From Adineta vaga (taxonomy: Eukaryota > Animalia > Rotifera): a stretch of DNA of 64,000 nucleotides. The stretch lies in assembly GCA_021613535.1 (NCBI GenBank), contig CP075494.1:4278001-4342000 (forward strand). Reading direction: 5' to 3'. How positions within the stretch are numbered: the first letter of the stretch is position 1; each line of letters begins with the position of its first letter. Below are positions 39,885-52,202 of the stretch, one piece after another. The notes under the pieces were generated by a model. The model worked only from the letters and a program-made list of their open reading frames with translations, was not told the DNA's origin and made no database searches. The translations under genes and the position numbers were made by a program.

Positions 39885-41167
39885 AAGAATCAATATTTGA
39901 AATGTCAATCGTTATTTGATTTTGAAGAATTAGCTAAAAAATTGTTAAAATCTCATCGTTTTCATTATTATGATTATAAAGCTGGTCAAGGTCTTACTTA
40001 TCAAGCTTGTCGAAATTATTTTGATAAACAATTAAGGATTATTCCGCGAGTTTTAATCAATGTTGAAGATATATCTATAAAAACAACAATTTTAGGGTAA
40101 ATTATTATTTTCAAATTCAAAACGATTTTCTGTTCGTTTAGAACGACCTATGAATCGCCAATTATCATTGCTCCAACAACTTTTCATTGTCTTGCAAATA
40201 CAGATGGTGAAGTTGGTACAGCTCGTGGTGCAACAGAAGCACAATGTATTTATACATATAATTGGATGTATTCCACAAAGCCTGAAGATGAAGTTTTACA
40301 AACAACTGGTTCAGTTTCTCTTTCGGTTGTTTCTTTTTTCTATGAATTTTTAATTTTAGGTCCAAAATTTTTACATGTCTACTTAACGACACCGACGAAA
40401 ATCTTAGAAAAAATTGTTTGTGAAGCTGAACAAAAAGGTTATCGAGCTATTGTAGTGACATGTGATCATCCAACGGATCGAGTACGAGATAATGTTTTAC
40501 CTTTATTCGAAGAGGCATCAAAGACGACTGATCGAGAATTAACTGAATGTATGCCAATGCCGAATATGAATGCAAAAGATATTATTGAAAAACAAAATTT
40601 TAGTACGGGCTCAATCACATGGGCTAATATAGAATCATTAAAACAGTTAACGAAATTACCAATAATTTGTAAAGGAATTTTATCTCCCATTGATGCAGAA
40701 TTAGCAATTAAACATGGTGCAAGTGGAATCATTGTTAGGTCTGATTAGTTCTTTATTATCACTTGAATACAATCGAAATCATTTTTTTTTTCAGTAATCA
40801 TGGCGGAAGACAAGTTGATACAGCACCAGCTGCTATTGAATGTCTTGAAGATATTATTAAGATTGTCGATGGACGAGCTGAAGGTAGATTTATAGGACTA
40901 TTTGAACATCGCATTTTTGAATTTTTCTTTTTAGTTTTTGTTGATACGGGTATTCGAAGTGGAACAGATATTTTAAAAGCATTAGCATTAGGTGCACGTG
41001 GTATATTGATCGGTCGACCCATTTTGTATGGATTGACTTGTGGTGGGCATGATGGAGTGAAAAGAGTTTTAGAAATATTAAAACGTGAATTAATTTATGA
41101 TATGGCTTGTTGTGGAGTGACGTCGATCGATCAAATTAATAAAGATATCCTTTATAAACATGCGTGA
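39885..41167 (+). CDS. FMN-dependent alpha-hydroxy acid oxidase (glycolate oxidase/HAO family), multi-exon; 5' end uncertain
   Basis: PRVL, PIIIAP, TCDHP, ICKGI, SNHGGRQVD, DTGIRSGTDILKALALGA and GRP motifs across short introns. Confidence 0.88.
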
Positions 41168-41310
41168 TTGAAAGAAATTTGAGTTATCGAATTTAATAAG
41201 TTGAATATAAAAATAAAAGAATCAAATCTGAGCATATCAGATTTACAACGTTATAATCAACTGCTTTTTTTTAGTATCTGAAGATAGTTATGATTGGATT
41301 TTCGATTGAA

Positions 41311-41621
41311 TTATAATGTTAATCCACCGATCGTTAGCATAATGAAAACACCAGCTGCTAATAAATAGAACCAATCTACGCCAACAAATCCAGCAAAAAT
41401 GCAGTTAATTTTTCTTTTTGCTTGTATTCACATGGTTTATTTGAATCGATAATAACATACTCGGATCCAGTACATTTACATCGACGAGTCGAAAGATCAC
41501 ATATGCCTCATAAGCCACAGGTAGCATTTCGTGTACATGATGTGGTCGTAAGTGACACTGTTGTAATAATACAATTCACAATAATGCAAAAGAGTAAGTT
41601 TAAAACGAATGATTTCAACAT
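41311..41621 (-). pseudogene. TM2-domain protein with Cys-rich ectodomain, disrupted
   Basis: Signal peptide MLKSFVLNLLFCIIV, C..C...C.C...C, then KRKLTAFL / frameshift / GFVGVDWFYL..AGVFIMLTIGGL; in-frame TGA at 41510-41508. Confidence 0.7.
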
Positions 41622-42864
41622 TTTGCAATAAATTTAAAATGAATTTTTGAAAGATCTTATTGTGTATTTATACCATAGATATAGTTATAAAATTACGCAA
41701 GACATGGAATATCCCGTACGCAGTTATGTAGTTGATTGCCCAAAAAAATTCATTTCCGTTTTATCGTAGAAAACGATTATTCATTGATATCAAAGAACGA
41801 TAAGAGAAATCTCTCACGGCTTATCACGCTTTATGTAATCACTGCGAAAGAATGTCAATTTTCATTTGATTTATTATTGATAGGAAGTTTAGAAACGGTT
41901 GTATTTTTTTCCAACGATCTCATAATAAGATTCAGAGAAATAGATCTCTAGAATATGATAATAATATTTATTCTAAATACAAAATTTTAAATATTATCCA
42001 GTTTATAACGAAACAATCTTTTATGAATAGTCACGTACTTAATAAAGATATATCTTTTTTAAGATTCTTTTCAATGTTCACGTTAAGATCAATCTTTCAA
42101 TCATACTCCATCACAATTAAGAGATTTATTTGCCAATGTCATAAGCCAATCAATTAGAGCCCGTATAGTTAAATATACCTGCCCTCATATACAAACATCT
42201 ATTACCATCTGCTAAATAAAATCATTCATATGCATCGACTGTGCTTGCAGGAAAAAAGCCATCTATTTCTATTTTGTTCGATGTAATACACTATATACAG
42301 ATTGAGTACAACAACAAATATCGATCAAATTATGACACGTTCTTTTACGATATTGTACATTGTATCGTCTCAAGAAATATAAATGAATTGAAATAATTTC
42401 AATATTTTGTAAACTTCTGTGTAAATAGCAGACCATGGAAATGAGCAATTCTTTGATAGTCGATTTCTATTCATTATATGAAATATGTCAAAATCATAAG
42501 GATGTCTCATTTTTCATTGTTTTATGAAATTTTCTGATATTACAGTATATATTTATGAGACAAGAAGAAATCAATTTTTGTCCATGTATAATAGAAAAAT
42601 AATAGTGAAGTCATAAATTCGGATTGCTTTTTTTTCTTCATCATACTAGGAAGTATTGACTGATACCAATCGTAGATGTGGAATACAAGTTTTTGTCAAA
42701 TAAAAAAAACTACTGACTAAAAGTTATGGAGACTTCGAAATTTTCTCATCCTTATCTGTCACTAATATACATCCGTTCAAATATTGACATGAAGATTTAT
42801 CGAAATGAGGATGGAATCATGTGTTTTATTCAATAAGCTTTATCTCTACGACAAGCAAGTTAGG

Positions 42865-44226
42865 TTAAAAACAAAACGAAAGATTACAATCAATTTTATC
42901 AAATGGTATTATATGTAGAAGATGATAGATAATCATTCTTGGTAAATGAACTGTATAATGAAGAAAAAATGGTAATGGATCATCTACGGAATAGAGAGCT
43001 TCTTTCCCATGGAGAAAAACTTTCCATTGTTTGATTAAATCTTGAATATTTCGTATTTTGAAAATATTCCATAATTCATGATATAACCAATAAGTTAGAC
43101 GAGCATTTGATTTTGGTTGAATTGGTTCATTCAATAAACGTTCTGTTCCTAGATAAGCTTCAGCAACAAGTGGATGATTAGAAAAAGTTGTTATTGCTGT
43201 ATGAGTACGAGCATTACATTCCAATGGATAAACGAGACCATTTTCATAACTTTCAATGAAATCAAATGCTATTTGACCAGTTGTATTTGCTTTTGAACAA
43301 AATTCTTTCACCCAATTGAGAATATTTAATTTATTATCAACATGTTTATAATTAAGAAGCCATGGTAATGATTCACAACAAACATGCAATCGTAATTCTC
43401 CATTTTTAACTGTTCCATGTGTACAATATTCTTTCCCAATAATAAATTCTTGCATAATCCATGGATATTCTTCATTAATAACTAAACTATTCAGATAATT
43501 AATCATTTGTTCTCGTGTATCACATGGAAGTTTGACTAAATTCGTTCGATTAACAAAATCATATTCGATACGTTTCAGAATAAATTGACATTTTTCTTTT
43601 GAAAAATCAAATGTTAAGATTTGTTTTGGATCAGTAATTCTATATGATTTCGGAACTGTTAAATCAAACGAACGTGCTCGATCCATAAATGCATATTTAT
43701 CACATAAAATTTGTACTTGTTCAAGATCACCATGAATTGTTTCACAATTGAATGGAATTAATGCTCGTTTAATTCGCGCATCAAGACATTCCGTAGATGA
43801 ATGTGAGACTGGAATAAAATAATCAATACGTTCTCGTTGAACAATATCAACAATTGATTGAATATATTCGAATTCATTGTTTGAATCTGCACTTAGATAA
43901 AATCGTGAAACACATCGAGAATAACGATTTGTTGCATACGGATATGATTCAGTAAGAACAACGTAATGACCAGCTGAATAGAAAGAACGTACTAATTGTA
44001 AACTTTTTGTTTTACCTCCATTCGATATTAAAATACGTTTAGCATTTGGATTATTTTTTTGTGGTTTTCGTGTAATTGAATGAAGTATCAATGTCACACA
44101 TGTAATGACAAATGGAAGAGGAGATGCAAGAAGAAATAATATTATATATCCAATTGTTTTTATAATATGATATAGATTTGCTGATTGAAATAATCGTGAT
44201 ACATGCAGAAGACGAGAAGAATTCAT
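42865..44226 (-). CDS. mysC: MysC-type ATP-grasp ligase (mycosporine-glycine synthase family), intronless
   Basis: N-terminal hydrophobic segment, ILISNGGKTKSLQLVRSFYSAGH, YFIPVS, FILKRIEYD, WIMQEFI.GKEYCTH, GELRLH.CCES, TGQIAFDFI, ECNARTHTAIT, TYWLYHELW, DDPLPF, all recalled as features of cyanobacterial Ava_3856/MysC. Confidence 0.88.
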   Translation of the reverse strand: MNSSRLLHVSRLFQSANLYHIIKTIGYIILFLLASPLPFVITCVTLILHSITRKPQKNNPNAKRILISNGGKTKSLQLVRSFYSAGHYVVLTESYPYATNRYSRCVSRFYLSADSNNEFEYIQSIVDIVQRERIDYFIPVSHSSTECLDARIKRALIPFNCETIHGDLEQVQILCDKYAFMDRARSFDLTVPKSYRITDPKQILTFDFSKEKCQFILKRIEYDFVNRTNLVKLPCDTREQMINYLNSLVINEEYPWIMQEFIIGKEYCTHGTVKNGELRLHVCCESLPWLLNYKHVDNKLNILNWVKEFCSKANTTGQIAFDFIESYENGLVYPLECNARTHTAITTFSNHPLVAEAYLGTERLLNEPIQPKSNARLTYWLYHELWNIFKIRNIQDLIKQWKVFLHGKEALYSVDDPLPFFLHYTVHLPRMIIYHLLHIIPFDKIDCNLSFCF

Positions 44227-44890
44227 TTTTATTCTAATCTAAAAAGAAAAAAAATTCTTAGAAAATCACTCTAAACATTGCATCACTAATAGAGTATGAA
44301 ACGATGTATTTCTTTTTCTTTTCTTATCTATATAACTCGATTAACGTGTGAAGAATGAATGAAAAGAATGAAAGAAAATTATTTTCAGTATAGTAGACGA
44401 TAATCGAAAGAGTATATAGTCTATAAAGTACAAAAAAAGATCAGCTAGTACAGTAACATATGTACTTAATCTGAATATGAATTTGATAAGATTTCGAATG
44501 ATCATTTCAATAAGTGAAGATATGTAACTCTACTTATAGCATTGTGTCGTTTGTTAATAAATAAATAATTCAAGAAATATATCTTAATCCATAATAGAGA
44601 ATGACAATATCAATATATCGATGATTATATAATCACGGATTGCGATGCAATATACTCTATAGTCGTTAAACGAAGTTATTCTGTTTTGTTCGTTCTTATG
44701 TAACTGTAATAAATACTGAAGTAAAAAAGAAAAAGAATATCGATGATATAAATACATCGAGTCAAAAATATATCTATCATTCTTAAGCATTGAAAAGTAT
44801 TTCTTGGTTTATCTTATCATTTGTTCGCGACTAAGAAATTATATTTTTATGTTCTAGATTGTATTCCAGTAGAAGAAAAAAAAGTAAATC

Positions 44891-45931
44891 ATGCCATCGT
44901 CACTTCGAATTCTTCATTTAGTTGGTTCTGTATACAATGATTTTTACTGTGATTTGTCCTATCGATATGCAGAAGGTTGTTTGGAAAATATAGCAACTGT
45001 TTCATTGGTACAAGACTTTCAAATTGCCTATATTACACCTGATGGTCAGTGGCGATTTTCTCGTTCGCTCAGTCCAAAAGATATCGATGCTGCCAATCCG
45101 ATGTCATTATCCGATGCAATACAATTCATAAAAGTACAAAAAATTGATCTGATGATACCACATATGTATTGTATTCCTGGAGTGACCCATTATCGTGCCC
45201 TATTCGATCTTCTTCATATTCCTTATATTGGTAATAGTCCGGATGTCATGGCATTGACAGCTCATAAAGTAAAAACGAAAGCAATTGTCGCAGCAGTTGG
45301 AGTTAAAGTACCTGATGGTGAATTGCTCCGTCAAGGAGATGTTCCCACCATTTTACCACCAGTGATTGTCAAACCTGCAAATGCTGACAATTCTTTAGGA
45401 GTATCGTTAGTTAAAAATATCAAAGATTACGATGTTGCTCTTAAAAATGCATTTAAACATGCAGATGAAGTGTTAGTCGAAAGATTCATTGAACCTGGTC
45501 GAGAAGTTCGATGTAGTATCATTGTCAAAGATGGACAACTCATTGCTTTACCATTAGAAGAATATCGATTGGATTCAGAACATCAACCTATTCGTAGTTA
45601 TGATGATAAATTTCCAGAGTTAGATAGCGATGGTAAATTTATTGGTTATCCTGAAGATGATATTGGAAAACATTGGATTGTCGATAGGAATGATTCGGCT
45701 ATCAAAAAAGTTCAAGAAATGGCTAAGAAATGTCATCTTGCTTTGGGTTGTCGTCATTATAGTCTATTTGAATTTCGAATCGATCCAAACGGAGAACCTT
45801 GGTTTTTAGAAGCTGGATTATTTTGTTCGTTCGGTGATGGTGGTGGAATATCACTTATGGCGAAAACTGCTGGAATATCATTAGAAGATTTATTGAAAAT
45901 AATGATTAAAGAAGCAATGAATAATGCATGA
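44891..45931 (+). CDS. mysD: MysD-type D-Ala-D-Ala-ligase-like MAA ligase, intronless
   Basis: LRILHLVGS..DFYCDLS..YA, IAYITPDGQWRF, P.MYCIPG.THYRALFDLL.IPYIGN, VKPA.ADNSLGV, GREVRC, CH.ALGCRHYSLFEFRIDPNGEPWFLEAGLFCSF; lacks the canonical Ddl GG.S.E and LHG..GEDG motifs. Confidence 0.9.
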   Translation: MPSSLRILHLVGSVYNDFYCDLSYRYAEGCLENIATVSLVQDFQIAYITPDGQWRFSRSLSPKDIDAANPMSLSDAIQFIKVQKIDLMIPHMYCIPGVTHYRALFDLLHIPYIGNSPDVMALTAHKVKTKAIVAAVGVKVPDGELLRQGDVPTILPPVIVKPANADNSLGVSLVKNIKDYDVALKNAFKHADEVLVERFIEPGREVRCSIIVKDGQLIALPLEEYRLDSEHQPIRSYDDKFPELDSDGKFIGYPEDDIGKHWIVDRNDSAIKKVQEMAKKCHLALGCRHYSLFEFRIDPNGEPWFLEAGLFCSFGDGGGISLMAKTAGISLEDLLKIMIKEAMNNA

Positions 45932-46959
45932 TGGTATTTTTTGTTTATTTATATTTTATTTCTTTGTTTTTCGATTCAAATAAATAATTTATTTCATTAG
46001 AAACATATAGACCATCCATCATTCCAACACTTAAATCAAATAATAATGTCATTGTATCATATGTGAGAGCTGCTGGTCTCTTTTTGAAAACTAGTTTTAT
46101 TTCGGCTGAAAATTTTTCTGTAATAGCTGAGGTAAGAACAGTTCAGAGATGCAGCGTCATCCACGAAATCTTACTTAATATTGAGTTTATGAGTCATCGA
46201 GAGAAGTGCACGACGCACAACAATAACAAAACACATATACATAAAAAACTTAGAGTAATTTCATGTCGAACGCCAATAAAGCATCATTTCATACAGTACC
46301 GGTAGAACTTTGTCTTCCGAATTCTTGATTATCAGATTGATTGGGCTATCCTTTTTCCAATGAGAAATATTTATGCACGATTCAATTCAATTCAACTATG
46401 AATATTTATCGTCGCTGTCAGGTAACTATGTATTATTCACTCATGTCTAAAATTTAAGTTGATAAATTCATTGTAAACTCAGACTTAAGTTATACACACG
46501 CACACTGATCAAAAGCTCACTAACATACATAAGAATATCCAACCAGATATTGTATTATGATAAAATAAGATTCTGTTCAATTTTTTCATAGTTTAACTAT
46601 CTGTTTTCTTTCATCTGTAGACTTTTAGCACGAAGACCATTGTAGAAAAAATTATATATGGAGCTGAAGGAGCAAAACGTTTGACAATTAAATTGATTAT
46701 TTCACTTTTCATGTAATTCAAAAAACGCCTAGTAGGACCATACAGATTTATGATGGTTTTTTTGTATTACTTATCACATTTTCTCATAACTTCATTGCTC
46801 TTTTAAATACATTTAGTGTGATGAATGTAGGATTAAGTCTATGTTAAGTTTTGAATGACTCTGTAACTGTTTCAATATACTTCGATTAGGTTATAATATG
46901 ATGTTTATATATGTAAAACAAACAAAATAGGATCTTTAAATAGAATCAAAAGTTTAAAG

Positions 46960-47060: not shown

Positions 47061-48020
47061 TTAGTGAATATTGATTTGTTTTATAGTCTGACGATTTTGT
47101 TGAACTTTACCCATTGTTAATGTATGAACAAATGGAACTACGCGTGTTGTTCGACGTAGGATATTTTTAATGACTTGACGAATATCTCGATCTAATAAAA
47201 TAGTACATAATGTTGCCAGAGCAACTGCTATAGATTGTGTTACCAAATTAATTAAATAAGGATATTTTGTCGGCGTTAAAAAGTATACAATACTTGGTAA
47301 TCCACCAGCTATATAAATACTGATTAGAAAAACAATATTTCGAAGAAATTCAAGATCACGTTTAGCACGATTTTGTGTAGTTTTTGTATTCATAATAACT
47401 TCTTCTAATCTCTTCATTTTATAGAAAATATATAGATAAATACAAATAGTAATTAGTAATGGAATAATATAATATGCAAAGATAGCACAAACAACATGTA
47501 ACGTATTTTGCAGTGGTATAAAACATAATTTTTCGGGATGATATTGAATATCTTTCGTTATCAGAGTAGATGATGTAATTAAGAGAACGACAAACCATTG
47601 AATACCAATAAGATAATAATGTGTTTTGAATTTAGTTAACCATCGATATTTAGTTGAAAGAACACAGAAAAATATTCGTGATATGGCTTGAATCATATAT
47701 GAATGTAATACACTGGCAATGCCTACATAACTGAAATAGGCTCGCAATTGACATCCAATTGTACTTGTTTCCCATTGTACAAAAAGAAAGAAGATATAAT
47801 TGATTATGGTAATGATGCTATAGAAAATCGATGCAAAACATGTATTACTTATGAGTAAATGATGAGTTGTATGTAGACGAGGTTTAGTTCGATAGATTAA
47901 AATCAATATAGTAGTACAAATTGTTATTGCAAAAATACCAAAGACACTGGATAATAATGCTACAAGATGATAATCTTCTCTCGTAGTAATTGTATCCGTA
48001 TAAACTGTTGTTGCATTCAT
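47061..48020 (-). CDS. Orphan rhodopsin-like 7TM GPCR, intronless
   Basis: Seven hydrophobic segments, LISNTC in TM2, GCQLRAY, QAISR (DRY position), Cys in ECL2, YIIP in TM5, GGLP in TM6. Confidence 0.85.
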   Translation of the reverse strand: MNATTVYTDTITTREDYHLVALLSSVFGIFAITICTTILILIYRTKPRLHTTHHLLISNTCFASIFYSIITIINYIFFLFVQWETSTIGCQLRAYFSYVGIASVLHSYMIQAISRIFFCVLSTKYRWLTKFKTHYYLIGIQWFVVLLITSSTLITKDIQYHPEKLCFIPLQNTLHVVCAIFAYYIIPLLITICIYLYIFYKMKRLEEVIMNTKTTQNRAKRDLEFLRNIVFLISIYIAGGLPSIVYFLTPTKYPYLINLVTQSIAVALATLCTILLDRDIRQVIKNILRRTTRVVPFVHTLTMGKVQQNRQTIKQINIH

Positions 48021-48859: not shown

Positions 48860-49630
48860 ATGTCTTCAATCGTAGACACAAGTATTTATCCTCATGCAAC
48901 TGGAGAAGCAGAAAAAACAGTTAAAGTACATTCAAATAAACATGAACTTGTCTTTTATGCTGGATGGTTTTGTCCATTTGTACAACGAACATGGTTGGTT
49001 TTAGAAGAAAAAGAACTTCAATATGAATATCGTGAAGTAAATCCATACAAAAAGGACAAAGAATTTTTGGATATTAATCCACTTGGTTTAGTTCCTGCCA
49101 TTGTGTACCACGGACAAGCATTGTACGAATCATTGATTCTTAATGAATTTCTGGAAGATGAATTTCCAGATTCTAAGTCTCTTTTGCCAAAAGATAGTTT
49201 CCAACGTGCACGATGCCGACTTTGGATTGATTATTTAACAAAAAAATTTACACCAGCATTCTATCGAACTATGCAAGCTCAAGAAGAAGATAAACAGAAA
49301 GAGGCTCTTAATGAACTTGTTGCCACTCTTAAAAACTATCTTGATCAAGTCAAAGGTCCTTGGTTTTTAGGTGAACAATTTTCATTGACAGATATTACTG
49401 TTGCTCCTTGGATCCGTCGTATGTACATTCTGGAAGAATATCGAGGATTTACAGATGACCTTGTTGGTGGACATTGGTCAGATTACAAAAAACTCATTAA
49501 TGAACGACCAAGTGTTATTAAAACATCGTCAGATTCGCAGCGTCTTATAGAAATTTATCAGCGATATTTAAAAAATGAAACACAATCTGAAGTTGGCAAA
49601 GCAATACGAGCAGGAAAATCATTACCATAG
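48860..49630 (+). CDS. Glutathione S-transferase, omega-like, intronless
   Basis: WFCPFVQR active-site Cys, EVNPYKK, INPLGLVP, LYESLIL.EFLED, GPWFLGEQFSLTDI.VAPW. Confidence 0.92.
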   Translation: MSSIVDTSIYPHATGEAEKTVKVHSNKHELVFYAGWFCPFVQRTWLVLEEKELQYEYREVNPYKKDKEFLDINPLGLVPAIVYHGQALYESLILNEFLEDEFPDSKSLLPKDSFQRARCRLWIDYLTKKFTPAFYRTMQAQEEDKQKEALNELVATLKNYLDQVKGPWFLGEQFSLTDITVAPWIRRMYILEEYRGFTDDLVGGHWSDYKKLINERPSVIKTSSDSQRLIEIYQRYLKNETQSEVGKAIRAGKSLP

Positions 49631-49876: not shown

Positions 49877-52202
49877 TTAGAGTTCAAATTTAAAGCGTTC
49901 ATGTGATTGAATTTTGATTTTTCTTTTCGGTATTTCCGATGCATCGAGTGTTTCATTAGGTAAAGGTGCTCCATTGAGTAACCATTGTCGCAATGTTTTC
50001 TTGGCATCACTATTGTGATTAAAAACGTGCTCCAATTCGCCATTCGGTTCGATTGACTTCATCAATTTACACGTATCGACACTTTCTTCGGTCACTCTTT
50101 GTCCATCCTAAACAGTTAAAAAATAACCAGCTCTTTCATTTATAACCAATGAAGTTTTGTAAAGCCATCGTATTTAGAAGAGAGTAATATTCTGATGATT
50201 TTTTTCTGCATACAGAGACATATGTTATCGAAATAAACTAACTACCTCTTTCTGTGACTCAACGTACAAACAATATGACTTACGAATGGAATGGTCCATT
50301 CACTAGCACGAAAAGCAGCAAGCAAATCAGCAGTATTCCCAATGAACAGATGTCGCAGTAACATCTGAGACTGATCTGGTAACTTGAGTACAATGTGATC
50401 TTTAATTTTCTCAGCTAATTTGCGATGTTGAAGGACAAGAGAAATCATGTCATTGATGGTCGATGGTTCCAAAGAAAGAATCCATCGTGAAACAATAACA
50501 AGTTCGTTAGCATCGAATATCTACAGTATACGATATGACTATGACTCGTTCAAAAAATTGTTTCTATTACTTGATACATTGGACCATGAAAACCAATAGA
50601 ATAATTAAGAAATTTACTAGCACCAGGATCTCCTTTGACAATTATTTCAGAATTTTCTAGTTGATTGCATATCTTTTCGACATCGCCAGAACTGAATAAA
50701 TCGTTAAGGAGATGTCCTTCGGGACCTATACGTATTGAACCATGCATTCCTTTAGCACCAGCTGATTTCTTTTTTATTAACTTGATGAATTCTTGTCGTG
50801 GTGTTAACACCTTTTGTTTGTCAAAGAATTGTCGAAGAGTGCTATCGATATTACCCGCCATTCCATACGCTACATATCTTTAAAAAAAACTCAAGTAATA
50901 TTATGAAGTATTTTATATTAAATATTATATTCCTATTGTTTTTTACTGACATACCCTGTCCAAATGCGTTTCCAATGTGCTTGAACAGCTTCCTCGCCTT
51001 GTGTCTCCATAATTTGATTGAGATACATTGTCACTGCATCTCGAGCATATCGTCCATGTCCATTAACATTATTATCAATAGTAGTATGTAAGAGGGAAAA
51101 ATTCGAACTTAAATTATATCGTTCGAGTATTTTTCGAAGACCAGCATGATGTGCAGGTGACGTAGTTTCGAGCCACTAAAATTCGTAGATTAGAGCGTTG
51201 TCAAAAAGGATCTATGTGGATCAAATTAAAGTTACTTACCAATGTGTAACCCAGAATTTCCGGTTCGTATGTTGTTGGAAACAGTGAAGTGGTCAATGGA
51301 AGTAGTGGTTTTTTAAAACTGATTTCAAAAATTGATTGTTGATCAACAAATTCACGTGAAAAAATCGATGGAACTTTGAGACCCAGACTCTCGAGTACAT
51401 TCAAATAGACATTGCAATGATTTTGTGATATATCACCGTTGCCCATCTCATCGATATAGATAGCAAACAGTTTACCTGAAGTTTCTGACATGGGTCCTTG
51501 TGGTACACCACGCAACCAAGCACCATCTGTGAGATGATAAGGTGCATGTTGGATCAAATAAGTCGTTAAATGTAGTTTTGTTTGAGCCCACCAGAAAATA
51601 GAATCACTAGATACAGGCTGGCCAGCTTCGCACCCTTTCAATAGAAAACCGAATTAGAATTGCATTCATATTTATATCTAATTACTAACAATCAAGATAG
51701 TTTTTCTTGAAAAGTCGTTCAAAAATATAATTCAATTTTTCGTTGACTTTTTTCTTGTCGTATGGAATATAAGTAAAATGATCGGGGAAGTCATGATTAT
51801 CGGCATGATCTTCCATCATATACTTCGCAGCTGCAGTGTGCATTCGTTCACTAAATTCTAAATATGGAAGTTAATTCAGATTTGACCGATCATTTTCAGT
51901 GTAAACTAACCTTTGGCAATATCCATTTTGTCCCAATGGTTTTCGGGATTGATAAAGAAATGAAAGAGATCACGATATGAGTAATCATCCAATGTTTTCT
52001 TCTCCTTCTTCAACGCTTCTTTATTCATCTTCATTTGTTTGCTTTTGAATAATCCATACATACTTGTGATAGTAGCACCCATCAAACATACAACGACTAC
52101 CATTTCAATACTCGCCATTGGACATAGTAACCAGCTCGACACATTATCCATCAAGGATGATGTTTCGTTTGCAAATGCTGGTATGATATTTAAAAATTGC
52201 AT
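49877..52202 (-). CDS. Heme-oxygenase-like diiron oxidase (iron-containing redox enzyme family) with N-terminal TM and duplicated C-terminal domain, 7 exons
   Basis: Spliced translation gives APYHLTDGAWL, IYIDEMGNGDISQNH, PEILGYTLWLE, LHTTIDNNVNGH, WKRIWTGY, then two repeats of the type IV.GDP..SK.L....F.GPM..IF....L....W. Confidence 0.85.

Follow-up and report, generated by a model that had tools for sequence, protein, structure and literature searches.

Does an animal carry in its own chromosomes the genes for the last two steps of mycosporine-like amino acid (MAA) synthesis? The MAAs of zooplankton, rotifers included, have been ascribed to diet or to symbiotic bacteria (PMC7073964), and the only animal MAA gene sets that we found described are those of anthozoans, where the last step is of the NRPS-like type (PMC4083563). 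The question is raised by two neighbouring open reading frames of the bdelloid rotifer Adineta vaga, a mysC-like ORF1 and a mysD-like ORF2, which lie on chromosome 5 (a chromosome-scale contig of 16.9 Mb). They were analysed within a window of 64,000 nucleotides, and all positions below without a chromosome number are positions in that window. The original prediction was made without awareness of any description of such a pair, and a literature search for bdelloids or Adineta in connection with mycosporine, gadusol or these ligases found none. We consider it likely that ORF1 and ORF2 code for the two final enzymes of the MAA pathway, gained by Adineta rotifers through horizontal transfer and now kept as their own genes.

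ORF1 (42865..44226, minus strand) encodes a 453 aa ATP-grasp ligase, and ORF2 (44891..45931, plus strand) encodes a 346 aa ATP-grasp ligase homologous to D-alanine--D-alanine ligase (Ddl). Both ORFs are intact and intronless, and they diverge from a gap of 664 bp (44227-44890), an arrangement that had been predicted with exact coordinates. Their definition draws on the ORF list, on family matches (PRK06849 for ORF1 and Dala_Dala_lig_C for ORF2), on identity to MysC and MysD, on RNA contigs (X8 for ORF1, X1 and X8 for ORF2) and, for ORF1, on an AF2 model searched with Foldseek. On one side, a host gene for an FMN-dependent dehydrogenase (40200..41256, plus strand) was recognized from Pfam FMN_dh matches on split ORFs and from X8 and X5 RNA contigs. 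The X8 contigs skip three GT..AG spliceosomal introns in this gene (40307>40359, 40736>40793 and 40881>40933), and an X5 contig terminates in poly-A at 41256. On the other side, Pfam identifies a 7tm_1 GPCR (47061-48020) and a GST (48860-49630), so the expectation of a GPCR beside the pair and of intron-containing genes around it is borne out. A diiron-oxidase-like gene also lies nearby, at 49877-52202. A link to the mys genes, of this gene or of the other three neighbours (GPCR, GST, FMN dehydrogenase), was rejected, since their homologs are absent near mys genes at other loci.

In composition, the pair resembles its surroundings. GC content is uniform across the window at ~31%, and GC3 is 0.11 in ORF1 and 0.20 in ORF2, compared with 0.17-0.19 in the neighbouring GPCR and GST genes and 0.37-0.40 in Nostoc genes; these values agree with the host-like, AT-rich codons noted at the outset. 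An independent DNA run (X6), in which allelic variants are present, is continuous from the FMN dehydrogenase gene through both ligase genes. Linkage of the pair to intron-containing host genes, which the original prediction had named as a check, is therefore found in data separate from the assembly.

Both intronless genes are transcribed. A single X8 RNA contig is collinear with the genome over the full length of ORF1 (42811-44240), and on ORF2 an X8 contig runs from codon 18 to beyond the stop codon (44944-46003) and an X1 contig covers 44873-45931. RNA contigs of studies P1 and P4 span both ORFs and leave the intergenic DNA uncovered, and at the 3′ end of mysC there is also a P2 RNA contig. 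Two Logan contigs (L134 and L135) carry neither leader nor poly-A, and no evidence of expression is drawn from them. The 3′ UTR of the mysC-like mRNA (42811..42864, minus strand) is marked by RNA contigs of three studies (X1, X5 and X8) that stop at 42811/42812, 54 nt beyond the stop codon, with no poly-A tail directly visible in the contigs ending there. For the mysD-like mRNA, the 3′ UTR extends over 45932..46003 (plus strand), up to the end of the X8 contig, and a minimal 5′ UTR occupies 44873..44890 (plus strand), the X1 alignment beginning at 44873. The 17 loose letters at the 5′ end of the X1 contig match 44860-44870 in part, with small indels.

The bdelloid spliced leader, a 23-nt sequence present on > 50% of bdelloid mRNAs (PMC1925144), is found on the mRNA of mysC. 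At 44240 the X8 contig departs from the genome, and its loose letters, when reverse-complemented, read CTTACCAAG. The departure falls at a canonical trans-splice acceptor AG (44240-44239) that is preceded by a pyrimidine tract (44241-44260) and followed by a 5′ UTR of 12 nt (44238-44227), acceptor and UTR together occupying 44227..44240 on the minus strand. Genome-wide there are 44 copies of ACAACTTACCAAGAG with GT directly after them, arranged in arrays, compared with 0 occurrences of a reversed control, so these sites are SL-RNA genes. The intergenic region that separates the two mRNAs (44241..44872, 25% GC) has no X1, X5 or X8 RNA contigs and is fully covered in the DNA run X6; the transcription starts of both genes must fall within it.

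We conclude that mysC and mysD are expressed host genes of Adineta vaga, integrated in an animal-type genome as had been proposed. The species is confirmed by a paralog that matches I4U23_015239 at 100%. Bacterial contamination or an assembly artefact, a notion that could appeal to the cyanobacterial identity of the nearest non-rotifer relatives, is already refuted by the chromosome-scale contig, the host-like GC3, the independent DNA run that continues into intron-bearing neighbours with two haplotypes, the spliced leader on the mysC mRNA and the orthologs of mysC and mysD in three Adineta assemblies.

The predicted product of ORF2 is a MysD-type ligase of the cyanobacterial type. Nostocales MysD encoded inside mysABCD operons share 65-68% identity with it, and its homolog in Nostoc sp. 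C052 is the fourth gene of an operon for a cyclase, an O-methyltransferase (O-MT), an ATP-grasp and a Ddl-like protein (mysA-B-C-D). All but one of the 82 residues that are invariant across 95 cyanobacterial MysD are retained (81/82), a degree of conservation that would argue for unchanged chemistry at C1. ORF2 is also the only intact mysD copy in the A. vaga genome. A reading of ORF2 as an ordinary Ddl, unrelated to MAAs and comparable to the Ddl-type foreign gene of bdelloids, could start from the Pfam Dala_Dala_lig_C match (8e-22) and from best PDB matches that are Ddl enzymes, and superfamily and fold class are indeed shared with canonical Ddl. However, the sequence refutes it. Every NCBIfam Ddl model scores far under its cut-off on ORF2 (best 99 vs 243 bits), whereas the real Ddl-type foreign gene on chromosome 3 (13.76 Mb) reaches 242 bits. 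Searches of three Nostocales genomes with ORF2 gave E~1e-145 for MysD and E~1e-5 for Ddl-type genes, with identities of 65-66% and 23-35%, respectively, and the same split appears in the tree, a quick tree in which very long branches (4.1+4.1, support 98) hold MysD and Ddl apart. Additionally, the position of the Mg-ligand Asn of Ddl is Gly in ORF2, within a motif, EAGL(Y/F)CSF, that is conserved across the MysD alignment. Phylogeny against Ddl, the comparison proposed with the original prediction, thus places ORF2 with MysD as expected. Because the Ddl outgroup is too distant to root the MysD tree, the donor genus of mysD is left unnamed.

The enzyme predicted from ORF1 is a MysC-type ATP-grasp, likewise of the cyanobacterial type and in agreement with its initial identification. 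ORF1 is 44-50% identical to cyanobacterial proteins and 46% identical to the operon-encoded MysC of Nostoc sp. C052, compared with only 27% identity to a fungal (Curvularia) ATP-grasp, and it falls in a rotifer-type MysC clade. Neither a Pfam match nor a PDB relative by sequence was found for ORF1. Its membership of the ATP-grasp enzymes, predicted for both ORFs, is indicated by NCBIfam PRK06849 (E 9e-102; 341 bits, cut-off 406) and by the AF2 model (pLDDT 90.1, pTM 0.88), whose best 50 Foldseek matches are all ATP-grasp enzymes (E~1e-14). The N-terminus contains a hydrophobic helical region (residues ~3-52). Of the 109 positions that do not vary among cyanobacterial MysC, ORF1 retains 80, and some of the changes, several in number, are common to rotifer paralogs; together with the PRK06849 score below the cut-off, this suggests that the substrate may differ. 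The idea that the rotifer ATP-grasps, a chromosome 4 copy among them, came from fungi was rejected on identities of 27-33% to the Curvularia enzyme vs ~47% to Nostoc MysC.

The earlier steps of the pathway have candidate genes on chromosome 4 of A. vaga (11.548-11.555 Mb), where a DDGS-type cyclase, an O-MT and a third mysC-like gene are found, all of them intron-bearing. The genome has one DHQS-like locus only, the cyclase gene, which has an intact two-exon model. Its product shows 55% identity to Nostoc MysA and 67% to eukaryotic DDGS, and lies far from AroB-type paralogs in the tree. The best tree nests the rotifer enzyme among fungal and amoebozoan DDGS (66-73% identity), with a cyanobacterial grouping not rejected by the AU test (p 0.23). 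The O-MT (Methyltransf_3, 224 aa) is encoded 310 bp downstream of the cyclase, a linkage kept in A. steineri, and the mysC-like gene is divergent from the cyclase. Orthology of the O-MT to cyanobacterial MysB was considered and is unsupported: identity to MysB is ~30%, the nearest relatives are bdelloid O-MT paralogs, and the enzyme belongs to a bdelloid O-MT family. We show that all four predicted functions of the MAA pathway are represented in the A. vaga genome, with an O-MT that is not a clear MysB ortholog.

The arrangement of these genes varies among loci. The A. vaga set is unclustered, with mysC and mysD on chromosome 5 vs cyclase, O-MT and mysC-like gene on chromosome 4. In A. steineri, all four functions lie within ~7 kb, and a stretch of ~10.5 kb holds mysD, mysC, cyclase, O-MT and a second mysC; the annotation of that genome gives cyclase and O-MT as one fused model. 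The head-to-head orientation of mysC and mysD is not conserved, which weakens the initial proposal of a shared bidirectional promoter. A tandem arrangement is seen in A. steineri and one environmental contig, a second such contig has the two genes convergent, and no mysC lies within 10 kb of one mysD paralog of A. ricciae. Co-transfer of mysC and mysD would be compatible with the trees.

The pair, first described as a mysC-mysD module, is not self-contained: the genome has further copies of mysC and mysD, some of them decayed. Paralogs of mysC are also present on chromosomes 3, 4 and 1, the chromosome 1 copy having altered core motifs, and on chromosome 3 (13.62 Mb) a paired mysD and mysC are both pseudogenes. 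A second MysD copy on chromosome 5 (4.18 Mb), considered as a remodelled enzyme, is a frameshifted pseudogene. In the DNA run X6, one haplotype of the window mysC has a stop at Q318, and the differences listed for it are 9 non-synonymous vs 4 synonymous, a non-synonymous excess. Each of these observations would suit a pair that is the decaying relic of an old transfer, transcribed yet without a useful product. We regard such a relic as very unlikely, however, and mysC and mysD are under purifying selection, with pN/pS of 0.24-0.30 against orthologs over a long divergence at which dS is saturated. The reference alleles are intact and expressed, with the trans-splicing evidence coming from the mysC mRNA, and MysD is almost invariant at the sites conserved in its family. 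Furthermore, the orthologs are intact in three named Adineta species, and the gene models of the cyclase, the O-MT and the chromosome 4 ligase are intact with clean introns.

Judged by this gene content, A. vaga can probably make its own sunscreen instead of taking it from food. We infer the mechanism from the characterized cyanobacterial enzymes, and with it what each enzyme does, its substrates, the final product and a role in UV or desiccation protection. The DDGS-type sugar-phosphate cyclase of chromosome 4 would convert sedoheptulose-7-phosphate to desmethyl-4-deoxygadusol, which the adjoining O-MT would methylate to 4-deoxygadusol. A MysC-type ligase, either ORF1 or a paralog from chromosome 3, 4 or 1, would then phosphorylate the C3 enol and add an amino acid, yielding a mycosporine such as mycosporine-glycine, glycine being the amino acid used in cyanobacteria. 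Finally, the MysD-type ORF2 would attach a further amino acid, such as Thr, Ser or Gly, to C1, and the product would be a disubstituted MAA, e.g. shinorine or porphyra-334. The claim that this animal makes disubstituted MAAs has thereby gained the upstream genes, which are present, and synthesis itself appears plausible. With somewhat less than even confidence, we propose a mosaic de novo pathway in which a eukaryote-type DDGS cyclase, an O-MT of a rotifer family and cyanobacterial-type MysC and MysD act together, the expanded MysC family perhaps leading to new MAAs.

The genes could instead be expressed host genes put to another use, in which the MysC paralogs, possibly together with MysD, act on different substrates and yield either a compound other than an MAA or a new mycosporine carrying different amino acids. 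The rotifer MysC family comprises many paralog lineages in the tree, and its members have lost 19-27% of the residues that never vary in cyanobacterial MysC, several substitutions being common to paralogs. A separate origin for the lineage of the chromosome 4 and chromosome 1 copies was considered and is unneeded, as a single rotifer-type MysC clade costs 0.78 lnL (p 0.37). The absence of a clear MysB ortholog points in the same direction as the diversity of MysC, and for homologs of MysC and of MysD the use of varied amino acids is known (review PMC10666671). We nevertheless find another use rather unlikely, given the near-complete set of invariant residues in MysD and the linkage of cyclase and O-MT to mysC and mysD in A. 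steineri, which one pathway would predict.

If the proposed MAA pathway is real, no animal before would have been shown to make MAAs by the MysD route, and no bilaterian invertebrate to have a full MAA pathway; the view that rotifer MAAs come from food or symbionts only would be contradicted. A small-molecule sunscreen or antioxidant would join the explanations for the stress tolerance of the desiccation- and radiation-tolerant bdelloids. These genes would also be a clear example of how a metabolic pathway of several genes can enter an animal genome or be assembled there, and the ligase genes, intron-poor and already adapted to a eukaryote, would be available for MAA engineering.

Among known systems, the cyanobacterial mysA-mysB-mysC-mysD cluster (Nostoc punctiforme type; Nostoc sp. 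C052) has the same two ligases, with mysC and mysD as neighbours in both, and the same chemistry would be expected, amino acids being added onto C3 and then C1 of 4-deoxygadusol. The rotifer genes differ in being AT-rich in their codons and in having monocistronic mRNAs and a spliced leader. The A. vaga pair is divergent, not co-oriented in an operon, and the cyclase and O-MT are on another chromosome. Moreover, the rotifer cyclase is nearer to eukaryotic DDGS, MysC has expanded to several paralogs, and the O-MT, at 224 aa and ~30% identity, lacks the N-terminal extension of MysB. Fungal and amoebozoan loci with DDGS and O-MT, in some cases with an ATP-grasp (Basidiobolus, Planoprotostelium and Curvularia), share with the rotifer an O-MT that adjoins the cyclase; in contrast, the rotifer ATP-grasps are closer to Nostoc MysC than to the fungal enzyme, and fungi are without MysD.

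Within animals, the vertebrate gadusol pathway, which reportedly proceeds through EEVS and MT-Ox (Osborn et al. 2015, cited in PMC7073964), is likewise de novo synthesis of a UV-absorbing cyclohexenone from sedoheptulose-7-phosphate, a likeness at the level of description. Its cyclase type and tailoring differ from those of the rotifer, and it has no ATP-grasp ligases, so that its product is without amino acid substituents. The anthozoan shinorine genes (Acropora and Nematostella) comprise a DHQS-like gene fused to an O-MT, an ATP-grasp and an NRPS-like gene (PMC4083563), and they equip an animal genome with a complete set of MAA genes of horizontal origin, as the rotifer genes probably do, with the cyclase adjoining the O-MT. 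In contrast to the anthozoan set, the predicted last step in the rotifer is a MysD-type ATP-grasp, not an NRPS-like enzyme of the MysE type, the host is a bilaterian, and the ligases are of the cyanobacterial type and have multiplied.

The window corresponds to C5:4278001-4342000 of the A. vaga genome (6 contigs, 100.8 Mb), and the two divergent genes of the original prediction lie there at exactly the predicted coordinates: a mysC-like ORF1 (window 42865-44226, minus strand, 453 aa) and a mysD-like ORF2 (window 44891-45931, plus strand, 346 aa), with 664 bp between them. GC content is uniform throughout the window at ~31%, and the pair is flanked by an FMN-dependent dehydrogenase spread over several ORFs, a rhodopsin-type GPCR and a GST, which agrees with the intron-containing, GPCR-bearing neighborhood expected for it. 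The GC3 of the pair (0.11 and 0.20) is host-like, as was also predicted, being in line with the GPCR (0.17) and GST (0.19) and unlike the Nostoc genes (0.37 and 0.40). Homologs of the gene at window 49877-52202 were sought near mys genes at other loci and none was found, with no conserved link seen.

ORF2 matches the Pfam domain Dala_Dala_lig_C and scores far below the cut-off of every curated NCBIfam model for D-alanine--D-alanine ligase (Ddl), the best being 99 bits against the 243 required. In three Nostocales genomes searched with ORF2, the hit to MysD has E~1e-145, as opposed to E~1e-5 for the housekeeping genes of Ddl type, and in a maximum-likelihood tree a very long, supported branch divides MysD-type from Ddl-type sequences, with ORF2 on the MysD side. 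The sub-threshold Ddl scores, the difference in E-values and the tree rule out that ORF2 is a canonical Ddl. The predicted MysD identity is further borne out by ORF2 matching 95 cyanobacterial MysD proteins at 81 of their 82 invariant positions. A genuine Ddl-type foreign gene on A. vaga chromosome 3 (C3:13762254-13763351, minus strand, 365 aa; 1237-2334 of extracted locus L017) reaches 242 bits on the Ddl model NF002527 and is separate from the MysD type, and therefore provides an internal contrast for ORF2. Beyond Adineta proteins, the nearest relatives of ORF2 are Nostocales 'Ddl family' proteins (64-68% identity), and the one from Nostoc sp. C052 is the fourth gene in an operon of cyclase, O-methyltransferase (O-MT), ATP-grasp and Ddl-like genes, which is the canonical mysABCD layout. 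Lichen cyanobionts (Peltigera-associated Nostoc), along with other terrestrial Nostocales, account for many of the closest MysD loci from cyanobacteria (L036-L115); they share moss and lichen habitats with Adineta.

ORF1 had no match in Pfam and no relative by sequence in the PDB, and its hit to NCBIfam PRK06849 (E 9e-102) falls under that model's cut-off. Its identity to cyanobacterial proteins is 44-50%, with 46% to the MysC from the Nostoc sp. C052 operon. An AlphaFold2 model of ORF1 (35 homologs in the input; pLDDT 90, pTM 0.88) was used for a Foldseek search, which returned matches to ATP-grasp enzymes only, in agreement with the proposed MysC-type ATP-grasp. ORF1 keeps 80 of 109 MysC-invariant positions, and because several of the substitutions are common to rotifer paralogs, the changes point to a shift across the rotifer lineage rather than random decay.

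We compared contigs from four studies with window 40200-46100 (5,901 letters). Contigs of the DNA run X6 cover every bin, including intergenic DNA, and contain allelic variants, so the pair is linked to its host neighbors as the original prediction held. Contigs of the RNA run X8 skip three GT..AG introns in the FMN-dehydrogenase gene and leave intergenic DNA bare; one (42811-44240) takes in all of ORF1 and a second spans 44944-46003. The RNA runs X1 and X5 show the same pattern, with a poly-A tail on the neighboring gene's transcript in X5, and the mysC transcript has its 3′ end at 42811/42812 in all three RNA runs. Past 44240 the X8 contig carries extra letters whose reverse complement is CTTACCAAG, and the minus strand at this position has a pyrimidine tract followed by AG. 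In bdelloids, over half of all mRNAs are reported to receive a trans-spliced leader of 23 nt (PMC1925144). The 3′ end of the leader followed by GT (ACAACTTACCAAGAG + GT) has 44 exact matches in the genome, in arrays (e.g., C5:9884354-9925971, C5:10912929-10934589 and C2:8684671-8691981), and the reversed control has 0, which identifies the arrays as spliced-leader RNA genes; many of these are inverted pairs ~165 bp apart. Given the leader letters at the pyrimidine tract-AG and these genes, we conclude that the mysC mRNA receives its leader by trans-splicing 12 nt 5′ of the ATG.

One X6 variant of mysC has an in-frame Ile (TTA) insertion and a G>A substitution by which Q318, within the conserved TGQIAFDF motif, becomes a stop (window 43275 and 43280). 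Elsewhere in mysC the X6 reference and alternative contigs are each at about half depth, and the stop-bearing allele probably represents the clone's second haplotype. The intact reference allele is the one carried by the RNA contigs (X1 and X8). The listed X6 differences comprise nine non-synonymous (the stop included) versus four synonymous in mysC, and two versus four in mysD; measured against orthologs with saturated synonymous divergence, pN/pS is 0.24-0.30 for both genes. At window 43181 the reference has G, and X1, X8 and X6 have T (S349Y in mysC); the G is either a reference-private variant or an assembly error. The mysC-mysD pair is real, expressed and domesticated.

As an MAA module, however, the pair is only one part of a gene set that is dispersed over chromosomes and partly redundant. 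For the cyclase, the O-MT and the chromosome 4 and chromosome 1 ligases, searches, comparisons and trees were each based on individual exons. The single DHQS-like locus in the genome is on chromosome 4 (C4:11548893-11554155; loci L001, L002 and L008), where a desmethyl-4-deoxygadusol synthase (DDGS)-type cyclase whose two exons are separated by a clean GT..AG intron of ~56 nt (exon 1 55% identical to Nostoc MysA) is followed 310 bp downstream, also on the minus strand, by an O-MT (224 aa, three exons, Methyltransf_3), with a two-exon mysC-like ATP-grasp gene divergent from the cyclase on the plus strand. An intact, intronless and solitary mysC paralog (C3:13724118-13725434; L007 1513-2829), 60% identical to ORF1 and 100% to A. 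vaga protein I4U23_015239, is adjoined by a convergent 242-aa ORF. The two-exon, long-branched copy on chromosome 1 (C1:2836185-2837557; L009, L011) is drifting, with altered core motifs: it keeps only 50 of 83 invariant residues and has the core motif ECHPYVN versus ECNPRxH in the others. ORF2 is the only intact mysD in the genome: a second one, 143 kb upstream (C5:4179765-4180790, L013), is frameshifted with stop codons in its central third, and a tandem mysD-mysC pair (C3:13622041-13623664; L010, L014) is in pieces over three frames, with stops. The stretch C3 13.62-13.76 Mb holds this decayed pair, the mysC paralog and the Ddl-type gene.

A. steineri has a five-gene cluster, ~10.5 kb long and all on the same strand, that consists of mysD, mysC, the cyclase and O-MT (annotated as a single model) and another mysC; its cyclase and O-MT are orthologous to the A. 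vaga chromosome 4 genes (73-93% identity). Directly 3′ of this cluster (L032 19158-21147) are a Cupin_2/AraC_binding gene and a zinc alcohol dehydrogenase, which might be tailoring genes or unrelated. Two eukaryotic metagenome loci of 42% GC (L030 and L031, ENA ERZ26165376) have the mysC/mysD pair convergent in one and tandem in the other; these pairs nest among Adineta sequences and adjoin a reverse-transcriptase/endonuclease element or a piggyBac-like transposase. In A. ricciae, one mysD paralog lacks a mysC within 10 kb. Therefore, mysC-mysD adjacency recurs, and the head-to-head layout is peculiar to this A. vaga locus among the loci examined. Among the matches listed, the named ones for all the genes were to Adineta only; MysC from Rotaria or Didymodactylos is not among them, which hints weakly that it is absent there.

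In both the MysD and the MysC tree, the cyanobacterial sequences sampled group in clades of 100% support, and the rotifer-type ones fall outside these in several paralog lineages. Because the root within MysD is unreliable, the Ddl outgroup being too distant, we leave the donor genus unnamed. Constraining all rotifer-type MysC, including the chromosome 4 and chromosome 1 copies, to one clade cost 0.78 log-likelihood units (p-AU 0.37), and the data are therefore compatible with a single mysC acquisition followed by duplication. The nearest non-rotifer relatives of the cyclase are from Basidiobolus and Planoprotostelium (67%), followed by many Ascomycota and Basidiomycota (~60%), some annotated as DDGS. 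In Curvularia clavata an 809-aa model next to the DDGS (L034 3324-6550), with an O-MT domain and an ATP-grasp region, looks like a fusion of the two. The rotifer cyclase falls in a eukaryotic clade apart from cyanobacterial MysA (branch 0.66, support 91), and a grouping with cyanobacteria is not rejected (AU test, p 0.23). A mosaic pathway, with a eukaryote-type cyclase and cyanobacterial-type ligases, is thus the best reading of the trees, short of proof. The closest relatives of the O-MT are bdelloid paralogs (A. ricciae, Rotaria and three further A. vaga loci) and beyond these generic O-MTs only; with ~30% identity to MysB, its putative pathway role rests on its conserved position beside the cyclase.

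The Adineta MAA gene set is apparently complete, and we consider an MAA function likely. Following the characterized enzymes (reviewed in PMC10666671), the cyclase and O-MT would yield 4-deoxygadusol, a MysC paralog would add an amino acid at C3 via a phosphorylated intermediate, and MysD would add a second at C1; these activities, their substrates and products, and any physiological role are predicted by analogy. MAAs of zooplankton, including rotifers, have been attributed to diet or symbionts (PMC7073964). As the original prediction supposed, our literature search found no publication that connects MAA genes with Adineta or other bdelloids; an earlier mention may exist in subscription journals or in supplementary HGT tables, which lay outside it. 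The rotifer ligases belong to the MysD-type route of cyanobacteria and would be expected to work alike. Anthozoans, the only animals for which we found MAA gene sets described, instead have an NRPS-like last enzyme (PMC4083563), whereas Adineta has a MysD-type ligase.
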